Positions 2,720 to 64,000 of a DNA stretch of 64,000 nucleotides are shown here, one piece after another. The notes under the pieces were generated by a model. The model searched no databases and was not told where the DNA came from. It saw only the letters and a program-made list of their open reading frames with translations. The DNA is taken from assembly GCF_032191835.1 (NCBI RefSeq), contig NC_083231.1, positions 32,426,001 to 32,490,000 of the forward strand, read 5' to 3'. The position numbers were made by a program, and so were the translations under genes. How positions within the stretch are numbered: the stretch's first letter is position 1; the number at the start of each line of letters is the position of its first letter. This stretch comes from Heteronotia binoei. Its lineage: Eukaryota.

Positions 2720-3014
2720 TATAATGTACCACGACGGGAGACGAGAGTAGGGCAACATGCTTTATTGCAAGTACATTATAAGATGGAGAACTGGTAACAC
2801 GCGGGCCGGGTCCCGCTTATATACAACTCCCGGTACAGCCTCCTGGACAGGCCAGCCCAATCCTGGCCTGTTGAACTTCCCGCCACAGCTGGTGATTGGC
2901 GGGGGTTTCGCGCCCTGTGCAAAGGCGCCTGGGGCAACCCAGTCGCCTCTTCGCGTGGGCGCGTGTAGCTTGGTATTGTGTTGTTACGTTGTATCGTAAT
3001 GGCGATACACTACA
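2720..3014 (-). repeat. 3' LTR of Gypsy element
   Basis: Direct repeat of 7260-7554; differs only at 2922/7462 and 2987/7527. Minus-strand TATATAA (near 2817-2823) and AATAAA (2761-2766). Confidence 0.96.
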
Positions 3015-3026
3015 CCCCTCCCCCCC
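3015..3026 (-). other. Polypurine tract
   Basis: GGGGGGGAGGGG on the minus strand, directly before the 3' LTR. Confidence 0.9.
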
Positions 3027-3029
3027 AAG

Positions 3030-6000
3030 TTATTGTACATAGTCCCTTAGGTAGGCGGGAGGCCGGTGTTCCCTGGTTGACCGTCTCGGGGCGGCTTGTG
3101 GAGTAGGCGCGGCTTCTGCGGCGGGGGCTTCTACGGGAAGTGGTGCGGCCGCAGGCTGTTGGTCCGGCTCTGCCGGTCTCTTGAGCTCTGCTGGCCCTGG
3201 GGACTCGCGCGTCGGTAGGATCACTGCTGGTATGGTGTCCCCTGGCTGGTTCTCCTCCGGGTCTTGCCTCCTCTGCTTCTGCCGGCGCTTCCGGGAGGGT
3301 GCGGCGGCGCAGTTGGTCGATGTGCCGCCGTAGGACTTGGCCCCCCTCCGTGGATACCTCGTAGTGGCGGGACCCCACTACCCGCAGCACCCGCCCCGCT
3401 AACCACTCCGGCCCCCTAGCGTAGTTTCGGGCGAATACGGGATCCCCCGCGAAGAACCCTCTAGCCGCTTCTCTGATCTCTGGGGACCCCCGCACGTCCG
3501 ATGCTCGGTCGGGGTGCAACCTGTCCAACCTCGTTGTGAGTTTGCGCCCCATGAGGAGCTCTGCTGGGCTAACCCCCGTGACTGGGTTGGGGATGACCCT
3601 ATTGTCGAAAAGGAACGCGGCTAATCTGTGGTCCCAGTCGCCCTGCATGATTCGGCCCAGGGCTTCTTTGGTTGTGCGGACCATCTGCTCCGCCTGGCCG
3701 TTGGTGGCCAGGTGGAAGGGGGCAGACCTTATGTGCCTAATCAGATACCTCTGGAGGAACGCCTGGAAGTCTCCCGAGGTGAACGCGGTCCCGTTGTCCG
3801 AGACTATGGTGTCCGGGATACCGTGTGTGCATAGGACTCTGCGCAGCGTTTGGATCGCGGCTGTGGAAGACGTGGACCCTACGGGAATGACCTCCAGCCA
3901 TTTGGTGTATGCATCCACTATTATCAGGAAGATTTGTCCCTGGAAGGGCCCCGCGAAGTCTATGTGGAGCCTGGACCAGGGTTTCCTCGTGGTTTCCCAC
4001 CGTGTGGCCTGGGCGCTGGGCAGTTCCGGTCGCAACTCCTGACACGTGCTGCATCTTCGGACCCAGTTCTCTATCTCCCCGTCTATTCCTGGCCACCATA
4101 CATAGCTCCTAGCTATTTATTTATTTATTTATTTATATTAAGATTTATACCCCGCCCTTCTCACCTAGGTGTCTCAGGGCGGCTTACAACACAGTAATTA
4201 AAACAATTTCAGTTTAAACAATTAAAATACCATTAAACCATAATTTAGTAAAAACAAGATAGAATAAGGCCTTCATTCTCACTATGCCTGGGTGGGTTTC
4301 GTGGAGTGATTCCAGGACCCGCTTCTGTAGCGGGGGGGGGGACTACCACCCGACTTCCCCATAGCAGGCACCCTTTGTGTGCAGCTAACTCATCCCTTCT
4401 CGTTTTATAGGGCTTGAATTCTTCCCCCATGTTCCCTTCCGGCCACCCCCTCACCACCCAGTCGAGAACCCTCGCTAGAGTCCTGTTCTTTCCGGTGGCC
4501 TTGGCCACTTCTGCTGCATGGAGGGGCTGGTCCGGGAGTGACTCTACCGACATGATATGGTGGGCAGGGGCTGGGTCGGGGCCCGTGTCAGGGAGCGGCA
4601 AGCGGCTGAGCGCGTCCGCATGGCCCATCGCCTTGCCCGCTCTGTGTACCAGGGTGTACATGTAAGAGTTGAGGAATTGATTCCACCTCAACACTCGTTG
4701 TGACAAGATTTGGGGGGTTTGGCGGTCCGGGGCCAGCAGACCCAAGAGCGGCTTGTGGTCCGTGGCTATTGTGAACCTCCGCCCGTACAAATAATCGTTA
4801 AATTTGTGGACCCCCGCTACAATGGCCAGGGCCTCCTTATCAATTTGGGCGTAATTTCTTTCTGCGGGTGTGAGAGTGCGGGAGTAGTAAGCGACTGGTA
4901 CCTCCCTGCCGTCCGGTAGCTGGTGCCCCAGGACTGCGCCCACCCCATACGGCGATGCATCGCAAGCCAGGATCACCGGTAGGTGCTCATCGAAATGATG
5001 AAGCACCGCATTGGAAACTAGGACGTCCTTCACCGCCTGGAAGGCGGTGGCCTGTTGCTTGCCCCACACCCAGGGAGCTTTTTTGTCCAACAGCCGGTGT
5101 AGGGGTTCAGTGAGGGCCGCCTTATGGGGTATGAACGTGTGATAGAAATTGAGCACCCCCAAGAAGCTCTGTAGCTCCGCTTTGCAGGTGGGAGCCGGGG
5201 CGTGCACGATTGCTCGGGTTTTTTCTTCGGTCGGGTGGATTCCCTCACCGTCCACAGCAAATCCAGGAACTCCACCCGCGGTACTCCCAACAAGCATTTC
5301 TCCCGCTTCACCTTGAGCCCTGCTGCTTGAAAACGACGGAGCACTTCCCTGAGGCGGCTGCTGAACTCCTCAGGGTCCGGGGCGGCGATTAGAACGTCGT
5401 CGAAAAAGGGTTGGACTCCGGGGATCCCTTTGAGAAGAGCATCCATTATACTCTGGAAAATCCCCGGAGCCACGCTGACCCCAAACTGAAGCCTACGCAC
5501 CCTGAACGCCCCCCTGTGGGTCACAATTGTCCGGGCCTCGGCCGTTTTGGCGTCTACCGGGAGCTGTTGGTATGCTTGCGCTAGGTCCAGCTTCCCGAAA
5601 ACCTTTGATCCCACCAGGGCTGCCAATACATGGCTGACCACAGGCACTGGGTAGGGGTTATCCTGGAGTGCCTTGTTTATTGTGCACTTGTAGTCTGCGC
5701 ATATCCGTACCTCCCCATTCGGTTTGACCGGGGTCACTATGGGGGTCTCCCACATGGCATAATCGACCGGCTCCAGGACCCCTTGTGCCGTGAGGCGGTC
5801 CAGTTCTGCCTCTATTTTGGGCTTTAACGCGAAGGGGATCCTCCTCGCTTTGAGCCGGATTGGCCTGACCGTCAGGTCGAGCGGTAAGGAGATGGTCGGC
5901 CCCTTATAACTACCCAGCGACCCGTCGAACGCGTCGGGAAACTCTCGGCATACTTCCCCGTACCCCCCGGCTGAGACGGTTTGCGCCACCCCCTCTATCC

Positions 6001-7180
6001 GGATTCCTAAGGGCCCGAACCACGCGAGGCCCAGCAGGGTGGTAAGTGGCCGCTTGACCACCAGGATGTCCAGCGGGCCCCTGAAGGACCCCCGCTCTAC
6101 TTGTACCCTGGCCCACCCCGCTATTTGTACCGGGTTCCTCTGGAAGTCCCGGAGTATGAAATCTGCCGGTCGTAGCTGCACCCACTGACGGGGGCACAGC
6201 TTCCTCAAGGTCTCCTCTGTGATTATGGAAATGGAGGAGCCTGAGTCCACCTCTATGAGGCATGGGGCTCCTTCGATGAGGACCGCCATTTTGATCTTGT
6301 TGGGGGTGGCCAGGGGCAGGTTCAGTACCTGTAGCGTGGTGGAGGCTGTGGAGTGGGACTCGGTGGCTTCGTAGTGCGTGGTCGATCTCCGGCGGTTGAT
6401 CTTGGCTCGGCACGCCCGCGCTATGTGACCGGTCTTCCCACAGCTTCTGCAGTCCCAGGTCCTGTACTGGCAGTCCCTTCTGTCGTGGGGGTCACCGCAG
6501 CTGGTGCACTTCGTGGCGGGCGGCCTCTCTGTCGTTCAGGGACGCTGTGGGGCTTGGTTGGTTGGCCCTGTTGGGCGGCGCAGCTGGAACGCTTCTCCCT
6601 CCTCCAGGCGGTCGGGGTCCAGCTCCTCGTGGTGGATGGCCTCGGTCTTTGCCCTGGGGATGGTCCGGGTGGTCCTCTCGAACGCCACGGCTTCGCTGAA
6701 AGCGCTCTGGAGGGTGAGCTCTTCCTTCGCGAAGAGCTTCTGCTGGAGCCTCTCGTCGCGAAGGCCCCAGGCGAACCGGTCCGCCAGGGTCTCTTCCAGG
6801 TTCGGAAAGTTGCAGTTCCCTGCGATCTGTCGTAGAGCCGCCAGGTAGTCCGCGGCCGATTCACCCTGGGCCTGGTCCCTCTTGTGGAAAAAGAACCGAT
6901 GGGCCACCCGCGAAGGCTGTGGCAGGAAATGTCCCGTGAGGAGCCTGACGACCTCCTCGTAGGACTTCTCCGTGAGTCGGGTGGGGGCCGAGAGACCTTT
7001 GGCGATCTCGAACGTGGCGGCCCCGCAGACGCTCAGGAGAACGTCCCTCTTCATGCTGTCCTCGGTTATGCGATTCGCCCTCAGGTAGCAATCAACCCGC
7101 TCCAAGTAGGACTCCCATCCTTCTGGATTTGCGGGGTTGAACGCCTCGATGTGACCGGTGGTCCCGCTCTGGCTGGCCAT
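3030..7180 (-). pseudogene. Gypsy gag-pol (disrupted)
   Basis: Gag MASQSG...; knuckles CTSCGDPHDRRDC and CRSCGKTGHIARAC; protease VDSG; RT PFFDD; RNase H CDAS/TDHKPL; integrase HIDFAGP/SDNG/GQAE; canonical-looking end RRSTREHRPPAYLRDYVQ*. Lesions: TGA at 6536-6538, frameshifts near 5264, 4332-4341 and 3225-3300, and an insertion at 4116-4264. Confidence 0.93.
4116..4264 (-). mobile_element. 5'-truncated L2-type tail nested in Gypsy integrase
   Basis: AT-rich 149-bp insert ending TGTAAGCCGCCCTGAG...GAGAAGGGCGGGGTATAAAT...(TAAA)n. Removing it plus one flanking TA restores RMKALARSYVWWPG. Confidence 0.85.
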
Positions 7181-7240
7181 GGTGGCGGCGGTCGTGGCGA
7201 TCGGTTGCCCATGAGTCTCCTGTGTAGCCTTCCAGCTAGG

Positions 7241-7258
7241 ATCCCATCCTCGTCGTCA
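7241..7258 (-). other. Primer binding site complementary to tRNA-Ser(GCU)
   Basis: Plus strand ATCCCATCCTCGTCGTCA matches the recalled tRNA-Ser(GCU) 3' end ATCCCATCCTCGTCGCCA at 17/18 nt, 1 nt from the LTR. Confidence 0.8.
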
Positions 7259-7259
7259 C

Positions 7260-7554
7260 TATAATGTACCACGACGGGAGACGAGAGTAGGGCAACATGC
7301 TTTATTGCAAGTACATTATAAGATGGAGAACTGGTAACACGCGGGCCGGGTCCCGCTTATATACAACTCCCGGTACAGCCTCCTGGACAGGCCAGCCCAA
7401 TCCTGGCCTGTTGAACTTCCCGCCACAGCTGGTGATTGGCGGGGGTTTCGCGCCCTGTGCAGAGGCGCCTGGGGCAACCCAGTCGCCTCTTCGCGTGGGC
7501 GCGTGTAGCTTGGTATTGTGTTGTTATGTTGTATCGTAATGGCGATACACTACA
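7260..7554 (-). repeat. 5' LTR of Gypsy element
   Basis: Direct repeat of 2720-3014, adjacent to the PBS. Confidence 0.96.
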
Positions 7555-20247: not shown

Positions 20248-20464
20248 TCATCTAGGTGACATGGTTGGGCTGGAGAAGGAGCCAGAATTCCTTGGAGATG
20301 GCAAAGGCATTGGTGGGGTGGTAGGGGACAGTGATCTTCGGCTGCACAGGTCACCATTGTGTAGCTTCCACAGAAGTTCCTCATTTTCCATTGACAGACG
20401 TTTATTTACTTTGGATTCTTTCTCCAGGGATTCTTGCAAAACTGCCTGCTCAGTGGAAAGTTGT
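20248..20464 (-). CDS. MTUS1: Microtubule-associated scaffold protein 1, last coding exon
   Basis: Acceptor CCCCCAG, then [40 protein letters not shown]...SPR*; near-identical to the recalled MTUS1 C-terminus. Confidence 0.97.
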
Positions 20465-21646: not shown

Positions 21647-21744
21647 CTCGAAAGCTCCATGTGTTTGTCCATTCGAGCTTTTAATTCCTCATTCTCCTGC
21701 TGAAGCTTCCTCCATTTCTCCCCTAAGGCTGTGTTGTTTTCCAC
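21647..21744 (-). CDS. MTUS1: MTUS1 exon
   Basis: 98-nt AG/GT exon, [32 protein letters not shown](R). Confidence 0.96.
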
Positions 21745-25671: not shown

Positions 25672-25788
25672 CATTTTTTCCATTTTTAACAACTTGTTAT
25701 CTTGCTGATGCAGTTTCTCATTCTTGATCTCCAGCACTGCTTTTAAACTTTCCAGCTCTTGTTCCAAATACATGATCTGAGGGTTTTT
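25672..25788 (-). CDS. MTUS1: MTUS1 exon
   Basis: 117-nt AG/GT exon, [39 protein letters not shown] (not in the ORF track). Confidence 0.97.
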
Positions 25789-27327: not shown

Positions 27328-27423
27328 AAGATTTGCTTTTTCTTTGGCTATTCGTTTTTGCTCTTCCAACTTCAGCTTTTCGTTCAAGGAATCGTTTTCA
27401 CTCTGTAACTCAGCAATTTTTTT
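27328..27423 (-). CDS. MTUS1: MTUS1 exon
   Basis: 96-nt AG/GT exon, KKIAELQSENDSLNEKLKLEEQKRIAKEKANL. Confidence 0.96.
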
Positions 27424-28251: not shown

Positions 28252-28325
28252 CTCTAGTTCTTCCTGTTTCTCTTGGAACGATTCTTGAAGTGTCTTTCTT
28301 TCTGATTCATGGACATTCTTGAGCT
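28252..28325 (-). CDS. MTUS1: MTUS1 exon
   Basis: 74-nt exon, ELKNVHESERKTLQESFQEKQEELE; donor GTTTGG. Confidence 0.93.
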
Positions 28326-29150: not shown

Positions 29151-29256
29151 CTGAAAAGGACGATTCGTATTCCCTCTTCAGTTCTTCGATCCTCTCTGTA
29201 TGACTGGCTTCAAGCTCTATTTTAAAGTTTTCATGTGTAAAGGTCAAGTCATCAAC
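29151..29256 (-). CDS. MTUS1: MTUS1 exon (GC donor)
   Basis: 106-nt exon, VDDLTFTHENFKIELEASHTERIEELKREYESSFS(E); donor CAG|GCAAGT keeps frame with the next exon. Confidence 0.93.
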
Positions 29257-29346
29257 CTGATGAGTGAGAACACATATTTTTCAAGACATATGAAACAGTT
29301 TCTCAGTTTGTTTCTGGGCACAACTGACAGTGCAAGTTCTTAATTA

Positions 29347-29948
29347 CTGTATTTTTTGGTCCATAAGGCGCTCCGGACCATAGGACGCACCTTCCTCCTG
29401 GGGGGCGATCCGTTGCCTCCGCCTCCGATCCCGGCGCTTCCCCCACGCCTGTCTGCCTGGCTCCAGCTTCTTCGAGCAAGCGCTGGGATCGCTCCACGCT
29501 GCCCCCACCGCAAACCCAGCGCTTTGCGAGCGCCGGCTGCGGAGGGGGCAGCGTGCTTCCTCCGTGCCTGTCTGCCTGGCTCCAGCTCTGACGCTTACAG
29601 CAAGCGCCAGGATCGCTCCCTCCGCCCTCCGATCCTGGCGCTTGCTGTAAGCGACAGAGCTGGAGCCAGGCAGACAGGCACGGAGGAAGCACGCTGCCCC
29701 CTCCGCAGCCGGCGCTCATAAAGCGCTGGGTTTGCGGTGGGGGCAGCGTGGAGCGATCCCAGCGCTTGCTGGAAGAAGCTGGAGCCAGGCAGGCAGGCAG
29801 GCAGGCGCGAGGGAAGAGCCGGGATCAGAGGCGGAGGCAGCGGATGGCCCCCCCCGGAGGAAGGTACCTTCGCTCCATAAGACGCACACACTTCCCCCCA
29901 CACTTTTTTTTTTGGGGGGGAGTGCATCTTATGGTCCAAAAAATATGG
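29347..29948. mobile_element. Non-autonomous Tc1/mariner (Tc2/pogo-like) fold-back element
   Basis: TA at both flanks (29345-46, 29949-50); TIRs CTGTATTTTTTGGTCCATAAG / CTTATGGTCCAAAAAATATGG; internal inverted arms of about 227 bp. Confidence 0.8.
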
Positions 29949-30608
29949 TATTTATTTTAAACATTTTTATGCTGTCTTTCCACCCAAAGCCTTCTTTTAT
30001 GTAGAGACAGAATTTGTTTGCCTTATGTAAATACAAGGGCACTGTTAAGGTGCAATTACTTACACCATGTTGGAGGACAATCAGGAGAATGAGCCTCTAA
30101 TGGTATGGCTGATACTTATAGGCCCTACAGTAGTGTTGCATAAACGTTGGCATTCATGGAAATGTTGGGGAATGAGCATTAAGCAAGCAGTGGGGGAAAA
30201 AATCTGGGAACTCCATGTGCGAAATGGAGCTCCCACACATCCATTGAGCACTCCACATGAATTTATATTGCATTAGATGCCCTGGTTCCAATACCAAACA
30301 CAACATCAGAAAGATTATTCATTACAGGCATTGTTCAAGATAATTGTCTCTAGAATTAACATTTAAGATGAAGCCAATATAAATCTTCTGCTGATGCAAC
30401 TACTAGGAATTTCAAAACCTTCATACAAGGAGGAGATTTTAAAATGAATTCAAGCACTATCAAGTGGCAGCAACCTCAATTTTATTCAAATGACACAATT
30501 GCGTTAAAACTACTTCGTGCAATCAGAAAATGCCCATCAGTACTGGAGCAACTCTCTGAAGCAAAAATATTTTCAGACATCTTTTGGGTAAGCCTCAATG
30601 GTCCAAAC

Positions 30609-31027: not shown

Positions 31028-31242
31028 CTGTTCTTGGAGCTGTGCTTTATATTTTTCAGCTTCCTCAATACAGATAGTCTGTAGTTTTTCGCACTCTGCT
31101 GTGTAAAACTGTTTTAGCCTCTCCTCCAGCTCAGCAAGATCACTTTGGTGCTGCTGGTTTAGCTTCTGCACAAATCCTTCATAAGCTGCTTGTAGTTCAT
31201 TCCTGTCTTTCTCCAATTTCTCACATGCTGTTGTAGTAGTTC
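31028..31242 (-). CDS. MTUS1: MTUS1 exon (coiled coil)
   Basis: 215-nt AG/GT exon, (G)[25 protein letters not shown]...[13 protein letters not shown]. Confidence 0.97.
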
Positions 31243-41972: not shown

Positions 41973-42494
41973 CTTGGAAACTTCAGACCATTTCCAGCAT
42001 TACGATCATCAGTTTATGCTGCCTCCAAGTAATTAACCTATTTACTGTAAGTAACATTTTTTTCTGATCATTTTACTCTAGAAAGACCCAGCATGACACA
42101 CTGATTAATAAAATATAGAATATTTTACAGTTGTTTCACTTACTGGCAAGATGTAAAACATATGGCTATTAAAAACATTTAAATAAACAGGGATAAATGC
42201 ATACTGACAGCCAGTCATTCCGCTGTCATCCACCCCTCCCCATGAATGTTTTGACCATCAGATACGTGTTTGAGAGGAAGCTCTGGTACGCTCAGTCAAG
42301 TTGGTGCCAGGAATTCAATGAACCTGGGGTCATGCAGTCAAAACGCAGGAGAAATACAAAGCGTAAGCACTTGAACAGAATGCACTCAGGGGATTAGATT
42401 CTGCTGGTTCAATCCCCATGGGTTATGTCTTAATTCAGTTTTGCTGCTACATTTTTATTTAAATTGCCACCATAAAAAAAGAACACGTGCTTAC

Positions 42495-42561
42495 CCAACT
42501 CGCCACGAAGGTGGATAAGTTCTAGAGATAGCTCTTTGTGCTGCTTTAGTGTTTCCTCTCT
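42495..42561 (-). CDS. MTUS1: MTUS1 exon
   Basis: 67-nt AG/GT exon, REETLKQHKELSLELIHLRGEL(G), matching the recalled REEALKQHKTLSQELVNLRGEL. Confidence 0.95.
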
Positions 42562-43502
42562 CTGCGGGGAGAAAGACATAAACAGAACATAGTAAATGTT
42601 CTAAGTAGAAAACACAACACTTTCCAATAATTAACTCGGATGCTATCTGGAGAATGACAAGAGACAGGAATGGGAAGCCAAGATATGAATCATCCAGGAT
42701 AACAGCTTTGTAACATTACAAACACACAGAAGGCCCTGAGTTAAGAAAGCACAGATGCCAAAATAAAAGACCTTGTAACTGGTTTGGTAAAGCGCACAAA
42801 TTACTTTTAAATTCATAAAACCCTCAGCTTGCTGGGTAAGTATGAGCAACTCTTCCAGGACAAAAACAATACCAGCAGTCAACTAGCATTCTAGGATCCA
42901 GGATCCATGCCTCTTTCCCATAACTCAGAGGAGAGCATGAAAACATTACGTGGCACATGTACTTTGTAACAAAGGTAAACATGACACCTAGATATGGAAA
43001 GGCTTTTAAGCTTTCCAAAGCAGGATGAAGCCACACTGCAGTTAAGAAGAAAAACAGAATTGGCTAGTAGTTTGTTGTATCGAGACTGCAGACAGCCATA
43101 CAATTCACACCAACTTCAAGAGTTCAACACACTGTGTGTGTGTCAGCACAAAGCCCCTGAGAAGAGCAAAGCTTTGCTTCCGCTCCCCCTTCCCAAACCC
43201 TCTATTAACCACATTCCAGAACAGTACAGTAAAGAATCTGAAACTAGACAAGAATCATGCAGTACCCACATAAAACAGGATGGGGTTGAATTTCATCTTG
43301 CTCCTTGTCTCTTTAGATGCAGCCACTGCTGTAGAGGACAGAGCATTGTGCAGAAATCACAAGATCCAGGTACTTCCCCCCCCCCCCGGCCCCGGTTGCT
43401 TGCTGCTGGAACCATTTTTCACCTTGCTTTGCAGCAAAGCACTACTTAAAAGAGTCCCTGGTGTTGTTCCAGAAGAGAACTACAGAAGAAAACATTAACT
43501 AC

Positions 43503-43556
43503 CTTCTTTCCAGCACACTGAGAATACAGGCACATTTTGCTGCTAGAGCAGCCCAT
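43503..43556 (-). CDS. MTUS1: Putative alternative first coding exon of MTUS1 (lipidation-type N-terminus)
   Basis: Strong Kozak (AGGATGG), MGCSSSKMCLYSQCAGKK, phase-0 donor AAG|GTAGTT in frame with 42561. Confidence 0.7.
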
Positions 43557-43599
43557 CCTCCGGCTTCTGCACCCAGCTTTTCGTTTCTCCCCCTGCTGT

Positions 43600-43930
43600 T
43601 CAAACACAGCAGGAGTGTACAGGTGGCACCACGACCACAAACTAAAACTGGTCGGGCTACATTTAACTCACTGCTAGCTAGCGCTCCATTGGTCACGGCC
43701 CTCAGCCCCCTACTTCATCATGCTTTGCAGTTACCGTACTTCTTCTACTGGCCTCTCCTCCTCCAACAGAAGCAGACACTGCAGCTCTCTTGGACTTGGC
43801 ACAAGCAGCCAGTGATTACTTAAAGCCACAGCCCTTTCGGGTTTTTTGAAAAATGAGAACCAGACATTACGAAGATCGATTGCCACTTACTCAAATATCA
43901 GCTGGTACAGTAAAGGGGCGGGGGAGAAAG
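43600..43930 (-). promoter_or_regulatory. Putative internal MTUS1 promoter
   Basis: CCAAT at 43688-43692, TTAAAT at 43661-43666, GC box near 43915-43923, several CpGs, within a stretch free of recognisable TEs. Confidence 0.4.
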
Positions 43931-45660
43931 AGGGGAGGAGGATAAATCCTGACCTCTTCCATGGATAATGGATCTTATTTTTAGCTTTTCTGAATTAGTT
44001 ATTCCAGGCTTTGACTCAATGGATAAATGCAAAGGTGGAAAAAAAAAGATGACATGAATGAAATGAGCGAGGGAGGAAAGAACAGCTCCTGCCAATATCA
44101 CTTTACAATTAGCCATTAGTTTAGAGCCCAGGTAACACGGTGCTTTGCATAATAATAAGAAGCTGAGTCCCCACTCAGTCTCAAAATTCTCAAAATTCAG
44201 ATGATGCAAGGAGGAGTAAAAGTGATGAAAGGAGATGAATTTGAGCAAATGAGATGGTACATGCATTTGAAACTTGAACAACTAGAGAGAACTTTTGCTT
44301 ACTGAAAGCCTTACAGGATTCTCTCCAAAACACTACGATTCAGATAAATTACTACTAATCCCACTTTGAAAACAGCTGGTAGAGTCTAACACTGCCATCC
44401 TGAGCACAACTGCATCTTTCTAAGTCTCTTGACTTCTAGGGAGCAGATCTCCTAAGGATGACGCTGTAAGACTATGCTGCAAGTTCCTGGTTGACTCTCC
44501 AGCCTCCTCTCCCCCACCAGAAGGAATTGGGGGGCTTTCTTAATTTCCCCTCAAAATAAACCAACTCCTCCTAATAAGAAGTGATACTTTTCAGAAACAG
44601 AAATATGCATATTGTTACAGTCCATTAATATTGATATGGACTGGCTGAGTTCAGTTCAAACCCTAGCTTGGCCATAAGACCTCCGGATAACCGTGGACAA
44701 ATGAGTATCTACCTCAGTTTGCAGATTATATAGCCCATATTAAAACAGGAAAACTAATGACCTGCTCACTGGATGTTGAGGAAAAGCCTGTAAAGAGGTT
44801 TGTGCTTTAAATTCTATACATACGATAATAATAAATACCTGGGCACATGGGGAATAGTTTTAAACGACGTAAGGAATGTAAAGGTAACAATTGTGCAATG
44901 AACTACGGTAGTTGAATTCAAGAGCAAAAACTGCCATGCAGTCAGAGAGCCCCACCTTGAGAATACATTGGTTACTATCAAGACATTCATTCCATCAGCA
45001 AATTGGTTTAAAACTCACAATAAGAAAAATCCACTTATCTGATAACTCTATTAGCGGCCAACCACTCCTACCAACCCTAAGTCACAGAAACAATCAAGAC
45101 AGTGTTCTTGGAGAGGGGGTGCAACAGCACTCTATGAGGGTGGTAGAATGCAGTACTGTTAAATTAAATCGCCTTGAGGGTCACCCAGTTTGATACACAA
45201 ATGTGAGGCAATCACTTTGCACCGGACTAGATCCTTGGATGTCTAAGCTAAAGAAAGGCAACTAATGCAAAAATTTTAGCTATGTAAAATAGAAGCCTAG
45301 GGTGTCAGGTAAACAGTTAAATCAGAAAACATTTAGCACTCATGGCACCATTTGTCAGGCAGAACAGAGATGTACATAGGAGCTGAATTTCTCTCTGACG
45401 GGAAGCTGTGTGGAGAATATGAGGATCAGGCCCTGGTGGCATTTTTAAATTGCCTAGATTGGCCTCTAAAATGGCAATGACCACTGACCTGATACAGCAG
45501 GATTCTTCTTTTATGAAGTCTACTCTGGATGGAAGTAAGTGTTGATAGTTAACAGCTATAACAAATACAATCCCAGAATTAGCCTGTAATCCTCTGCTGG
45601 ACATTGAACTCCGAAACTTAAGCCTGAACTCAAGAAGTCCAATAAGCTTCTTTACATGGC

Positions 45661-46088
45661 AATCATAAGAGTTGGAAGGGACCTCTAGGGTCATCTAGTC
45701 CAACCCCCTGCACAATGCAGGAACCTCACAATACTTCCCCCTAAATTCACAGGTTCTTCATTGCTGTCAGATGGCCATCTAGCCTCAGTTTAAAAACCTC
45801 CAAGGAAGGAGAGCCCACCACCTCCTGAGAAAGCCTGTTCCACTGAGGAATCGCTCTAACGGTCATGAAGTTCTTCCTAATGTTGAGCCGGAAACTCTTT
45901 TGATTTAATTTCAACCCATTGATTCTGGTCCCACCTTCCAGGGCCACAGAAAACAATTCCATACCATCCTCTATATGACAGCCCTTCAAATACTTGAAGA
46001 TGGTGATCATATCACCTCTCAGCCACCTCCTCTCCAGGCTAAACATCCTCAGCCCCTTCAACCTTTCCTCACAGGACTCGGTCTCCAG
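45661..46088 (-). mobile_element. CR1 LINE 3' fragment
   Basis: Peptide MFSLERRWLRGDMITIFKYLKG...FRLNIRKNF...VVGSPSLEVFK; CR1 end GACCCTAGAGGTCCCTTCCAACTCTTATGATT. Confidence 0.92.
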
Positions 46089-51325: not shown

Positions 51326-51407
51326 AAGTAAGCTTCAGTCACATTATGTGTACCTTTGGAAACGATCTGGATTAAAAGGGAAGCTACGGTCTACATTCAC
51401 ACTGGCC

Positions 51408-51686
51408 GTTTTCGCACTCACGTTTTACTGGCGCCACGACCCTCCTGACGCCGGCGAATCTGCATGGATTTCGCACCAGAAGCGCCGGCGCACCCAGAAG
51501 CGCCGGCTACTTCCGTCGCTAAACCAGCGCAAACGGAAATCGCAAAGATGCAGGAAAACGTTTGCGCTGGCTTAGCGACGGAAGTAGCCGGCGCTTCTGG
51601 GTGCGCCGGCGCTTCTGGTGCGAAATCCATGCAGATTCGCCGGCGTCAGGAGGGTCGTGGCGCCAGTAAAACGTGAGTGCGAAAAC
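51408..51686. mobile_element. Near-perfect fold-back MITE
   Basis: 128-bp inverted arms (51408-51535, 51559-51686) with one mismatch and a 23-bp spacer; CpG-rich. Confidence 0.85.
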
Positions 51687-52165
51687 ACCCACTGCTAGCA
51701 AAAAGAATAATAAAAAAAATTAAAACTGGATTCCATTTTATCTCCAATGTTGTTTTTAACAGTTTAATAGTTTTTAACTGCTCAGTCATATGCTAATTGT
51801 CTTTTTGTTTTAATGTCATATCAGTGTTTCAACTTGTATACATTTTAACACTTTGAAAATGATAGGGGAGAGCAGAATATTTTAAATAAAATAAATCTGC
51901 AGCCAGTCACATAAGCATTTTCCTCATTTACTCTTTTAACCAATTTGAATAAAGCATTACCAAAATAATGCAAAATGACATGTGTTATCATAACACGAAC
52001 ATTCATACCACAACACCATGGTAGAAAATAAATGGAATTTGAAGCTTTTTAAAAAAGTTATATGGATTATACTGTTCTCAGGTAGAACTGCTATTCTGCC
52101 TCAGTAGCATTAGCCTGCCTTTGGAAAGGTCAGAACATTCTGTCTTCAAGTACATGATCTTCATT

Positions 52166-63006: not shown

Positions 63007-63224
63007 CTCAGACTGCAAGTGTTGGATCACCAGAGTTAATGCTTCAAATTTCCTGTTACTGCTTGCCAAGCATTTCTTCAGTTGTTGGATAATTCCACTT
63101 TGGTGTTCACATTTTCTTTTGTATTGCGTCAACTCGTGTGTTTTTGTTTCTGTAGAATGTACTTCAGCAGAACTGCGGGTCTGTATGCATGAGTTCTTAG
63201 GACTCCTTTGCTTCCCCTTGTCAA
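63007..63224 (-). CDS. MTUS1: MTUS1 exon (first shared exon in window)
   Basis: 218-nt AG/GT exon, (V)DKGKQRSPKNSCIQT...ELTQYKRKCEHQSGIIQQLKKCLASSNRKFEALTLVIQHLQSE; phase-0 donor. Confidence 0.95.
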
Positions 63225-64000
63225 CTGCAAAAGCAAGACAAGAACACTATTTTTATTACATCAACTCTGAAGCTATAAATGAGTAAGAATCACATCAAAT
63301 CTTCCATTGTCCAAACTCTGCTAGTCAATGAACAATGTTTTTAAAAGAGCAAGCAGCACACTAAATTTCTGACTAAGAAAATTATTTAATTGGATTTGTA
63401 TGCTAGACTGGCTTTCAGTGAAGCATTGGATTTCACCCATGATTTTATAGTCAATGAGCTGAAGTTTATCCATTTATTGAATAACAACGTCTCCTATTCT
63501 CATATACTTTTCCCATTTCAGCACAGTTACCAACAGTATTGGAGTTCAACAGTATTGCAACTCTTCTGGTATTGCAACTTTGAATGCAGAAGGTGACATA
63601 ATCCATTTTGTATTCATTGTATTTTAATTGGCATAACTAGTGTAACATTTCTATGCATGTTACAATTCAGCATATTTTGTGTCTTCAACATTTGTGTTTT
63701 CAACATCAACAAGTCAGCATACTTTGTGTTCTTAACATTTTCACAAATCTAACCTTCATTTCTTTCTTTCAGACCTTCCAGTTAGATTTAGCCAATTGTT
63801 TATTGTTAGACTCCTGTTGCCAAGTTACTAAAGCTTTGTATCGCAATACACAGGCCAAAATTAAAGGGCTTCCCAAGTCAATTGAACAATATATTGCTTA
63901 ACCATTATAAGTCAAGATGTGAAAAGATAATTACTAAGATGGAGCCAGAAAGGCTACAGGGTTACTTCCTGCAATTCTAGTACCTTAACTGTCATAAGTT

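Follow-up and report, generated by a model that had tools for sequence, protein, structure and literature searches.

A conserved alternative first exon of MTUS1 and the candidate lipid anchor of its short product

Does the 20.4-kb intron that precedes the REE...LKQHK exon of MTUS1 hold a first exon of its own, and would the protein begun there be attached to membranes through its N terminus? The question is posed by a first-pass annotation of the window (the whole stretch of 64,000 nt analyzed here, to which all positions refer), which had proposed a hidden lipid-anchor exon with an internal promoter at 43503-43930. Work on MTUS1, or ATIP, has concerned its roles in tumour suppression, in microtubule regulation and as a partner of the angiotensin AT2 receptor, and has dealt almost entirely with ATIP1, ATIP3 and ATIP4.

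A spliced first exon within an MTUS1 intron

The exons were mapped by tblastn with a snake MTUS1 protein (P0002), to which the window exons show 57-97% identity, and splice boundaries were fixed by eye. The resulting features are as follows.

63007..63237, minus strand: upstream common exon of the long and ATIP1-like isoforms (...VIQHLQSE), located by tblastn; absent from the short isoform
43765..43930, minus strand: putative core/proximal promoter of the short isoform, with a GC box CCCCGCCCC at 43923-43915
43557..43764, minus strand: 5' leader of exon 1, at least 208 nt, covered by an RNA contig without mismatch; holds a CCAAT at 43692 and conserved blocks
43503..43556, minus strand: coding part of the alternative first exon, MGCSSSKMCLYSQCAGKK, 54 nt or 18 codons, ending in phase 0 at a GT donor
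42562..43502, minus strand: intron 1 of the short isoform, 941 nt, GT..AG, with zero RNA depth inside
42495..42561, minus strand: exon 2, 67 nt, REETLKQHKELSLELIHLRGEL, common to the long isoforms
31028..31242, minus strand: exon 3 (tblastn with P0002; splice boundaries by eye)
29151..29256, minus strand: exon 4, with a GC rather than a GT donor, AG/GCAAGT (tblastn; boundaries by eye)
28252..28325, minus strand: exon 5 (tblastn; boundaries by eye)
27328..27423, minus strand: exon 6 (tblastn; summed exon model)
25672..25788, minus strand: exon 7 (tblastn; boundaries by eye)
21647..21744, minus strand: exon 8 (tblastn; boundaries by eye)
20248..20464, minus strand: coding part of exon 9, including the TGA stop (tblastn; boundaries by eye)

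Exon 1, exon 2 and the seven further exons total 1044 nt including the stop codon and encode 347 aa, which is exactly the sum that the first-pass annotation had given for splicing through the eight remaining exons; its intron of about 940 nt, leading to a phase-0 exon at 42561, measured 941 nt. A pyrimidine-rich acceptor (...ctttctccccgcag, ending ...ccccgcag) precedes 42561, and exon 2 reads REETLKQHK.... The protein consists of 18 unique residues followed by the shared C-terminal coiled-coil region, and it lacks everything upstream of the REE exon, namely the long ATIP3 N-terminal part and the ATIP1-type MLxSPKFSL start. The program-listed open reading frames of both strands were uninformative.

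Over 329 aa the spliced protein shared 92.7% identity with the MTUS1 of Euleptes europaea, and it was 88-89% identical to that of two other geckos, so the gene in the window is the MTUS1 of a gecko-like squamate. It also grouped with squamate MTUS1 in a tree (97 SH-aLRT), and its homologues carry the Pfam domain PF27558 (MTUS1_CCDC69_CC2); a search against a local Pfam set, whose profiles did not include the PF27558 model, returned just sub-threshold coiled-coil noise. In the C-terminal coiled-coil region the protein is an orthologue of MTUS1. Two minor features of the gene are the GC-AG intron after exon 4 (donor CAG/GCAAGT, 29151-29149, minus strand), all other introns being GT-AG, and a run of about 14 G at 43386-43373 (minus strand) in the short isoform's first intron, 120 nt past its donor.

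Four RNA runs were compared with positions 42350-44150. The junction between 43503 and 42561, which had been put forward as a check on the gene model, was seen in run X1, an RNA library in the form of assembled contigs: two contigs with a summed depth of 23.3 join 42561 to 43503 and skip 941 nt bounded by CT..AC on the plus strand (GT..AG on the gene strand). A 246-nt exon-1 contig of the same run covers 43519-43764 colinearly and with zero mismatches, and X1 depth is zero both within the intron (42594-43447) and upstream of approximately 43814. In two X1 contigs, with a depth of about 41, the alignment stops at 42563 and the loose ends agree with the 3' end of the common exon at 63007; X1 thus also contains the canonical junction of the long isoforms. 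A word search with exon 1 recovered 100% of the sampled words in X1 and 33% in X7, a second RNA run of the same study. The raw-read runs X18, X21 and X22 had 2, 0 and 0 reads over 42350-44150, too few to bear on expression or 5' ends. RNA support in the window's species comes from one study (X1 and X7) and from assembled contigs, from which true 5' ends and abundance are not readable.

Use of the segment as an internal cassette exon, entered through acceptors at 43595 or 43592, was considered and rejected: the RNA contig runs colinearly through both, and all three frames of the leader contain stops, which rules out read-through into exon 1 from an upstream coding exon. The bases preceding the contig end at 43764 are TT rather than AG, and the contig has no loose end. 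The RNA shows exon 1 as a separate, spliced exon whose leader spans 208 nt or more.

Its ATG at 43556 lies in a Kozak context (CGGAGGATGG, with A at -3 and G at +4) and is the first to open a long frame, which begins with the initiator Met and Gly2 and runs to the donor GTAGTT directly after 43503. The claim of a strong-Kozak ATG opening MGCSSSKMCLYSQCAGKK up to a phase-0 GT donor thus held when the minus strand was read. An in-frame TGA at 43670-43668 lies 114 nt upstream of this ATG, with zero in-frame ATGs between the two. The 20.4-kb intron contains 383 ATGs, six of which open a PS00008-type peptide, so the N-myristoylation motif alone is not beyond chance; only the ATG at 43556 adds both the Kozak context and a phase-0 GT donor. 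The reality of exon 1 follows from the RNA evidence and from conservation, rather than from the motif.

The leader contains four ATGs (43721, 43718, 43689 and 43662), each followed by a stop after 1-3 codons; they could lower translation. A CCAAT and a GC box had been placed upstream of the exon. Both are present, and the GC box at 43923 is indeed upstream, about 150 nt beyond the contig end; the CCAAT at 43692 is 72 nt inside the transcribed contig, a position within the leader (which extends at least to 43764) that rules it out as an upstream promoter element. No CpG island was found at 43.4-44.2 kb (o/e 0.3-0.4), and an Rfam search of 42-45 kb gave no match. As to the proposed absence of transposable elements from 42.0-44.6 kb, no sequence from 42001-46000 is repeated elsewhere in the window, which is consistent with it, but other stretches are equally repeat-free and the property is not distinctive.

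The leader can be aligned with the 5' ends of two transcripts of other tetrapod species, both amphibian-like, in the blocks AGTACGGTAAC..TGCARAGC and TTAAATGTRGCCMGACCAG (window 43740-43640, minus strand; L001:1-110; L002:1-100). The 5' ends of the X1 contig, L001 and L002 lie at homologous positions to within a few tens of bases, all three being assembled contigs that do not show true 5' ends. In frogs the ATG in the second block is open and in frame, and it is annotated as the start of a 24-residue extension (MWPDQFWLQ...) that would bury Gly2, whereas the homologous ATG in the window is immediately stopped by a TAG. Leader conservation is thus one of DNA or RNA.

Conservation of the exon in MTUS1 and its paralogues

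Protein searches with the shared C-terminal region matched hundreds of MTUS1 isoforms, from which a set of 38 cluster representatives was obtained, and a cluster look-up supplied accessions. In all 38 the same exon, always exactly 18 codons long, opens an MTUS1 model or transcript; the taxa include primates, shrew, tenrec, gopher, platypus, guineafowl, snake, frogs, coelacanth and teleosts (mtus1a), and accessioned models were found in guineafowl, ape, monkey and mole-rat. The conserved positions of the peptide are these.

Positions 1, 2, 3, 6 and 9: M, G, C, S and C, 38/38 each
Position 7: K or R, 37/38
Position 13: P, 34/38
Position 14: C, 34/38
Position 18: R or K, 36/38

Residues 2-7 of the window peptide (GCSSSK) fit PS00008, G-{EDRKHPFYW}-x(2)-[STAGCN]-{P}, a pattern that every one of the 38 orthologous peptides also matches. 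Met8, the exon's one alternative start, is not conserved (A/L/M/V). Proteins of 342-347 aa begin with MGCSSSKVCLHFPCAAKK in snake, MGCASSRLCLYPQCAAAR in guineafowl and MGCSSSKMCLFSPCAATR in shrew, and similarly in tenrec and gopher. Intron-less Logan contigs from three other species (L001, L002 and L003) have the same exon joined to the REE exon. Conserved residues show synonymous differences. Together with the RNA joint, this conservation makes it highly probable that the MTUS1 segment is a real alternative first exon, and the suggestion of an ancient isoform agrees with an exon retained from teleosts to primates. In one bonefish model (Albula glossodonta P0130, 535 aa) the MGC exon is read as internal, between the ...VIQHILTE and REE exons; this is probably a prediction artefact, and it places the exon in the homologous intron of a basal teleost.

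The other known first exons of the gene differ in position and content. ATIP1 and ATIP4 are MTUS1 isoforms from alternative promoters (PMC3566609), and like the short isoform they put an alternative promoter and first exon before shared 3' exons. Unlike it, their first exons lie further upstream and their transcripts include the ...VIQHLLSE exon (63237-63007 in the window); ATIP1 and ATIP4 share 395 C-terminal residues against about 329 in the short isoform; ATIP1-like forms start with MLxSPKFSL... and not with MG.

A comparable exon occurs in the paralogue MTUS2. Its short isoforms (347-362 aa) start with MGQCCCKLYYCLQCLDKT in opossum and nine other marsupials, with MGHGCCKPSSCTRCLHST in sloth and with MGHCCCKPYNCLQCLDKT in camel, where an annotated 13-residue extension precedes it; MGQCCCK... 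starts are also found. This MG exon is joined to NESALVKEKELS, the counterpart of REETLKQHKELS in MTUS1, which bears out the 18-residue MGHCCCK...QC..K start at a homologous junction that the first-pass annotation had named. The two genes agree in the 18-residue MG first exon, the junction, Cys14 and a basic residue near the end; they differ at position 3, which is His or Gln in MTUS2 with cysteines at 4-6 (five cysteines in the 18 residues), and are about 40% identical in the common part. Within MTUS1 itself, teleost short forms of the type MGS(T/S)ASK...KKKRKREE sit inside the mtus1b clade of a quick tree (99 SH-aLRT). These forms (P0185, P0196, P0199, P0201, P0212 and P0217) keep Gly2, Ser6 and Lys7, have lost the cysteines and, ahead of the REE junction, have gained a KKKRK patch.

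The third family member, CCDC69, supplies the experimental precedent. It has a conserved myristoylation motif at AA 1-7 and is myristoylated experimentally on Gly2; G2A, the NMT inhibitor IMP-1088 and N-terminal tags each lead to loss of its cortical localisation, and its membrane fractionation depends on Gly2 (PMC11621681). It binds microtubules through C-terminal coiled coils, and its anchoring protects the microtubule network (PMC11621681). The Gly2 part of the MGC start given in the first-pass annotation is supported by this work; the Cys3 detail falls outside that support. Like the short MTUS1 protein, CCDC69 belongs to the MTUS family (PF27558) and combines a short coiled-coil chain with a Gly2 myristoylation motif; unlike it, CCDC69 is the product of a separate gene that makes the short form only, and it has a putative NLS at residues 15-18 instead of the C9/C14 pattern (PMC11621681). 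The proteins with which that paper compares CCDC69 are ATIP3A, ATIP4 and TIP150, and not the short MTUS1 or MTUS2 forms (PMC11621681). With the MTUS1 exon present from teleosts to primates, an equivalent cysteine-rich MG exon in MTUS2 and a similar start in CCDC69, a short form with the predicted anchor is old.

The predicted membrane anchor and its alternatives

Myristate needs a second membrane signal, either a palmitate or a basic cluster, and Met-Gly-Cys is the textbook signal for dual acylation. Among SH4 signals, Lyn, Yes and Hck start with MGCxKSK, and the G-alpha-i/o proteins likewise have Met-Gly-Cys anchors. In the short MTUS1 protein a cysteine adjoins the candidate myristoylated glycine (Cys3, without exception among the representatives), and its start resembles the anchors of the Src family and G-alpha-i/o in Gly2 (myristate), Cys3 (palmitate), Ser6 and Lys7, although these are unrelated proteins and the likeness ends at residue seven.

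The best explanation of the locus is an alternative first exon that encodes a membrane-anchored short MTUS1, to which we assign a probability of about 0.78, a figure that applies mainly to the myristoyl anchoring. Transcription would begin at an internal, non-CpG promoter in the intron preceding the REE...LKQHK exon, and the exon-1 mRNA is spliced from 43503 to 42561 and through seven more exons and encodes the 347-aa coiled-coil protein. Met1 would then be removed and Gly2 acylated by N-myristoyltransferase, for which MGCSSSK has a fitting sequence, and Cys3, perhaps along with the conserved Cys9 and Cys14, may undergo S-palmitoylation in the manner of Src-family kinases and G-alpha-i with their Met-Gly-Cys anchors. 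The MTUS coiled-coil module would thus be held at membranes, as the paralogue CCDC69 is by its myristate, and by analogy with CCDC69 only, the short form may be a sequestered microtubule regulator rather than a simple non-binder. N-myristoylation of the short protein is quite probable, the full statement that includes palmitoylation somewhat less so, and as a hypothesis derived from sequence the membrane anchor is well-founded. Replacement of the cysteines by a basic patch in mtus1b is what selection for membrane binding would be expected to produce, and we infer that this swap of second signals is the strongest indirect argument for the anchor. On this evidence the short MTUS1 is a probable dual-acylated protein, orthologous to isoforms predicted in other species and a sibling of the myristoylated CCDC69.

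The alternative that survives best, although unlikely, keeps the myristate on Gly2 and gives C3, C9 and C14 some other role (metal binding, disulfide or redox chemistry, or protein contact), in which case membrane binding would be weak and reversible. The invariance of C9 and the retention of P13-C14 in 34/38 peptides go beyond what a simple Gly-Cys anchor needs, the five cysteines of the MTUS2 peptide point the same way, and in the mtus1b clade the cysteines are dispensable where a basic patch is found. Against this, Met-Gly-Cys is itself the established dual-acylation signal, and a polybasic patch in place of the cysteines is easier to reconcile with a second membrane signal than with a metal site.

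It is less probable still that the exon is real but Gly2 is not N-terminal, translation starting upstream or at Met8, or the exon serving as an internal cassette, so that no lipid anchor forms. An upstream in-frame ATG is annotated in several frog models, with their start 24 residues upstream, and also occurs in Logan transcript L001 and one camel MTUS2 model, in all of which the glycine would be internal, and the four upstream ATGs of the window leader might favour a start other than 43556. Every one of those four is closed within 1-3 codons, however, the in-frame TGA at 43670-43668 intervenes, and the RNA contig passes 43595 and 43592 without a break and shows no AG before its end at 43764. 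Met8 varies while G2, C3 and S6 are invariant, a pattern that would be unexplained if the glycine were internal. The remaining alternative, a chance open reading frame in intronic transcriptional noise with no functional product, would account for a motif that arises six times by chance in the intron and for an exon without a CpG island, but it is effectively refuted by the precise RNA splice joint with zero intron depth, the 18-codon exon common to 38 representatives across bony vertebrates and the independent transcript contigs of three other species.

Prior annotation, possible significance and further features of the window

The exon is not hidden, as had been claimed, since RefSeq XP_ models with an MGC start are predicted across many species; the accompanying suspicion that the isoform might already be annotated in some species proved correct, in the form of these computed models. 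Examples are XP_021250901.1 (Numida meleagris X7, 347 aa), Erythrolamprus reginae X3 (347 aa) and XP_024200784 (Pan troglodytes X7, 342 aa). Like the window isoform, these orthologous forms have the MGC 18-codon exon joined to the REE...LKQ exon and are 342-347 aa long; they differ in coming from other species, as computed models that carry no functional note. The gecko entries among the matches (Euleptes, Sphaerodactylus and Eublepharis) are isoforms of 442-558 aa without the MGC start, and the exon is possibly missing from gecko annotations while its orthologue is predicted elsewhere.

Among approximately 8.4 million full texts, MTUS1 or MTUS2 and myristoylation occurred together only in the CCDC69 paper (PMC11621681) and otherwise as incidental co-mentions. 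The literature search found no paper containing the exon-1 peptide or discussing a short MTUS1 isoform, and no experiment on lipidation (myristoylation or palmitoylation) of MTUS1 or MTUS2; MTUS1 did not appear in the myristoylome supplementary lists or the cDNA screen that were searched. The reading of the short MTUS1 as a lipid-anchored form therefore appears to be new.

The value of this locus for genome annotation is ordinary. Its wider significance is that a fourth MTUS1 product, found from fish to primates and probably membrane-tethered, is present in gene models without comment. CCDC69 needs its myristate to stay at the cortex and off microtubules, and this may hold for MTUS1 and MTUS2 as well. 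The private first exon permits clean tests, with G2A and C3S mutants and isoform-specific knock-outs.

The comparisons also invite a joint reading that we regard as tentative, at slightly less than even odds for the whole. The lipid-anchored short form would be the ancestral product of MTUS1, MTUS2 and CCDC69, predating the vertebrate genome duplications, and the long microtubule-binding N-termini would have been added upstream later. Myristate and a second signal would have been kept throughout, the latter as palmitoyl-cysteines in MTUS1, mtus1a and MTUS2 and as a polybasic patch in mtus1b and CCDC69-like forms, and the conserved leader with its tiny upstream reading frames would be a translational or promoter control element common to tetrapods. 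If this reading were true, a plasma-membrane-tethered ATIP would be the isoform best placed to meet the tail of the AT2 receptor.

Elsewhere in the window, a CpG island of about 4.7 kb at 2800-7500 (GC 0.57-0.69, o/e 0.6-0.95) lies about 13 kb beyond the MTUS1 stop and is presumably the promoter of a neighbouring gene. A CpG-rich patch at 29300-30000 (GC up to 0.69, o/e 0.7-0.8) occupies the intron just upstream of exon 4 and contains a 123-codon open stretch (29715-29347, minus strand) with no resemblance to MTUS1; about one quarter of the surrounding kilobase is repeated elsewhere in the window. An isolated 300-nt segment at 51401-51700, in a repeat-containing part of the intron, has a CpG o/e of 1.32 (36 CpG).
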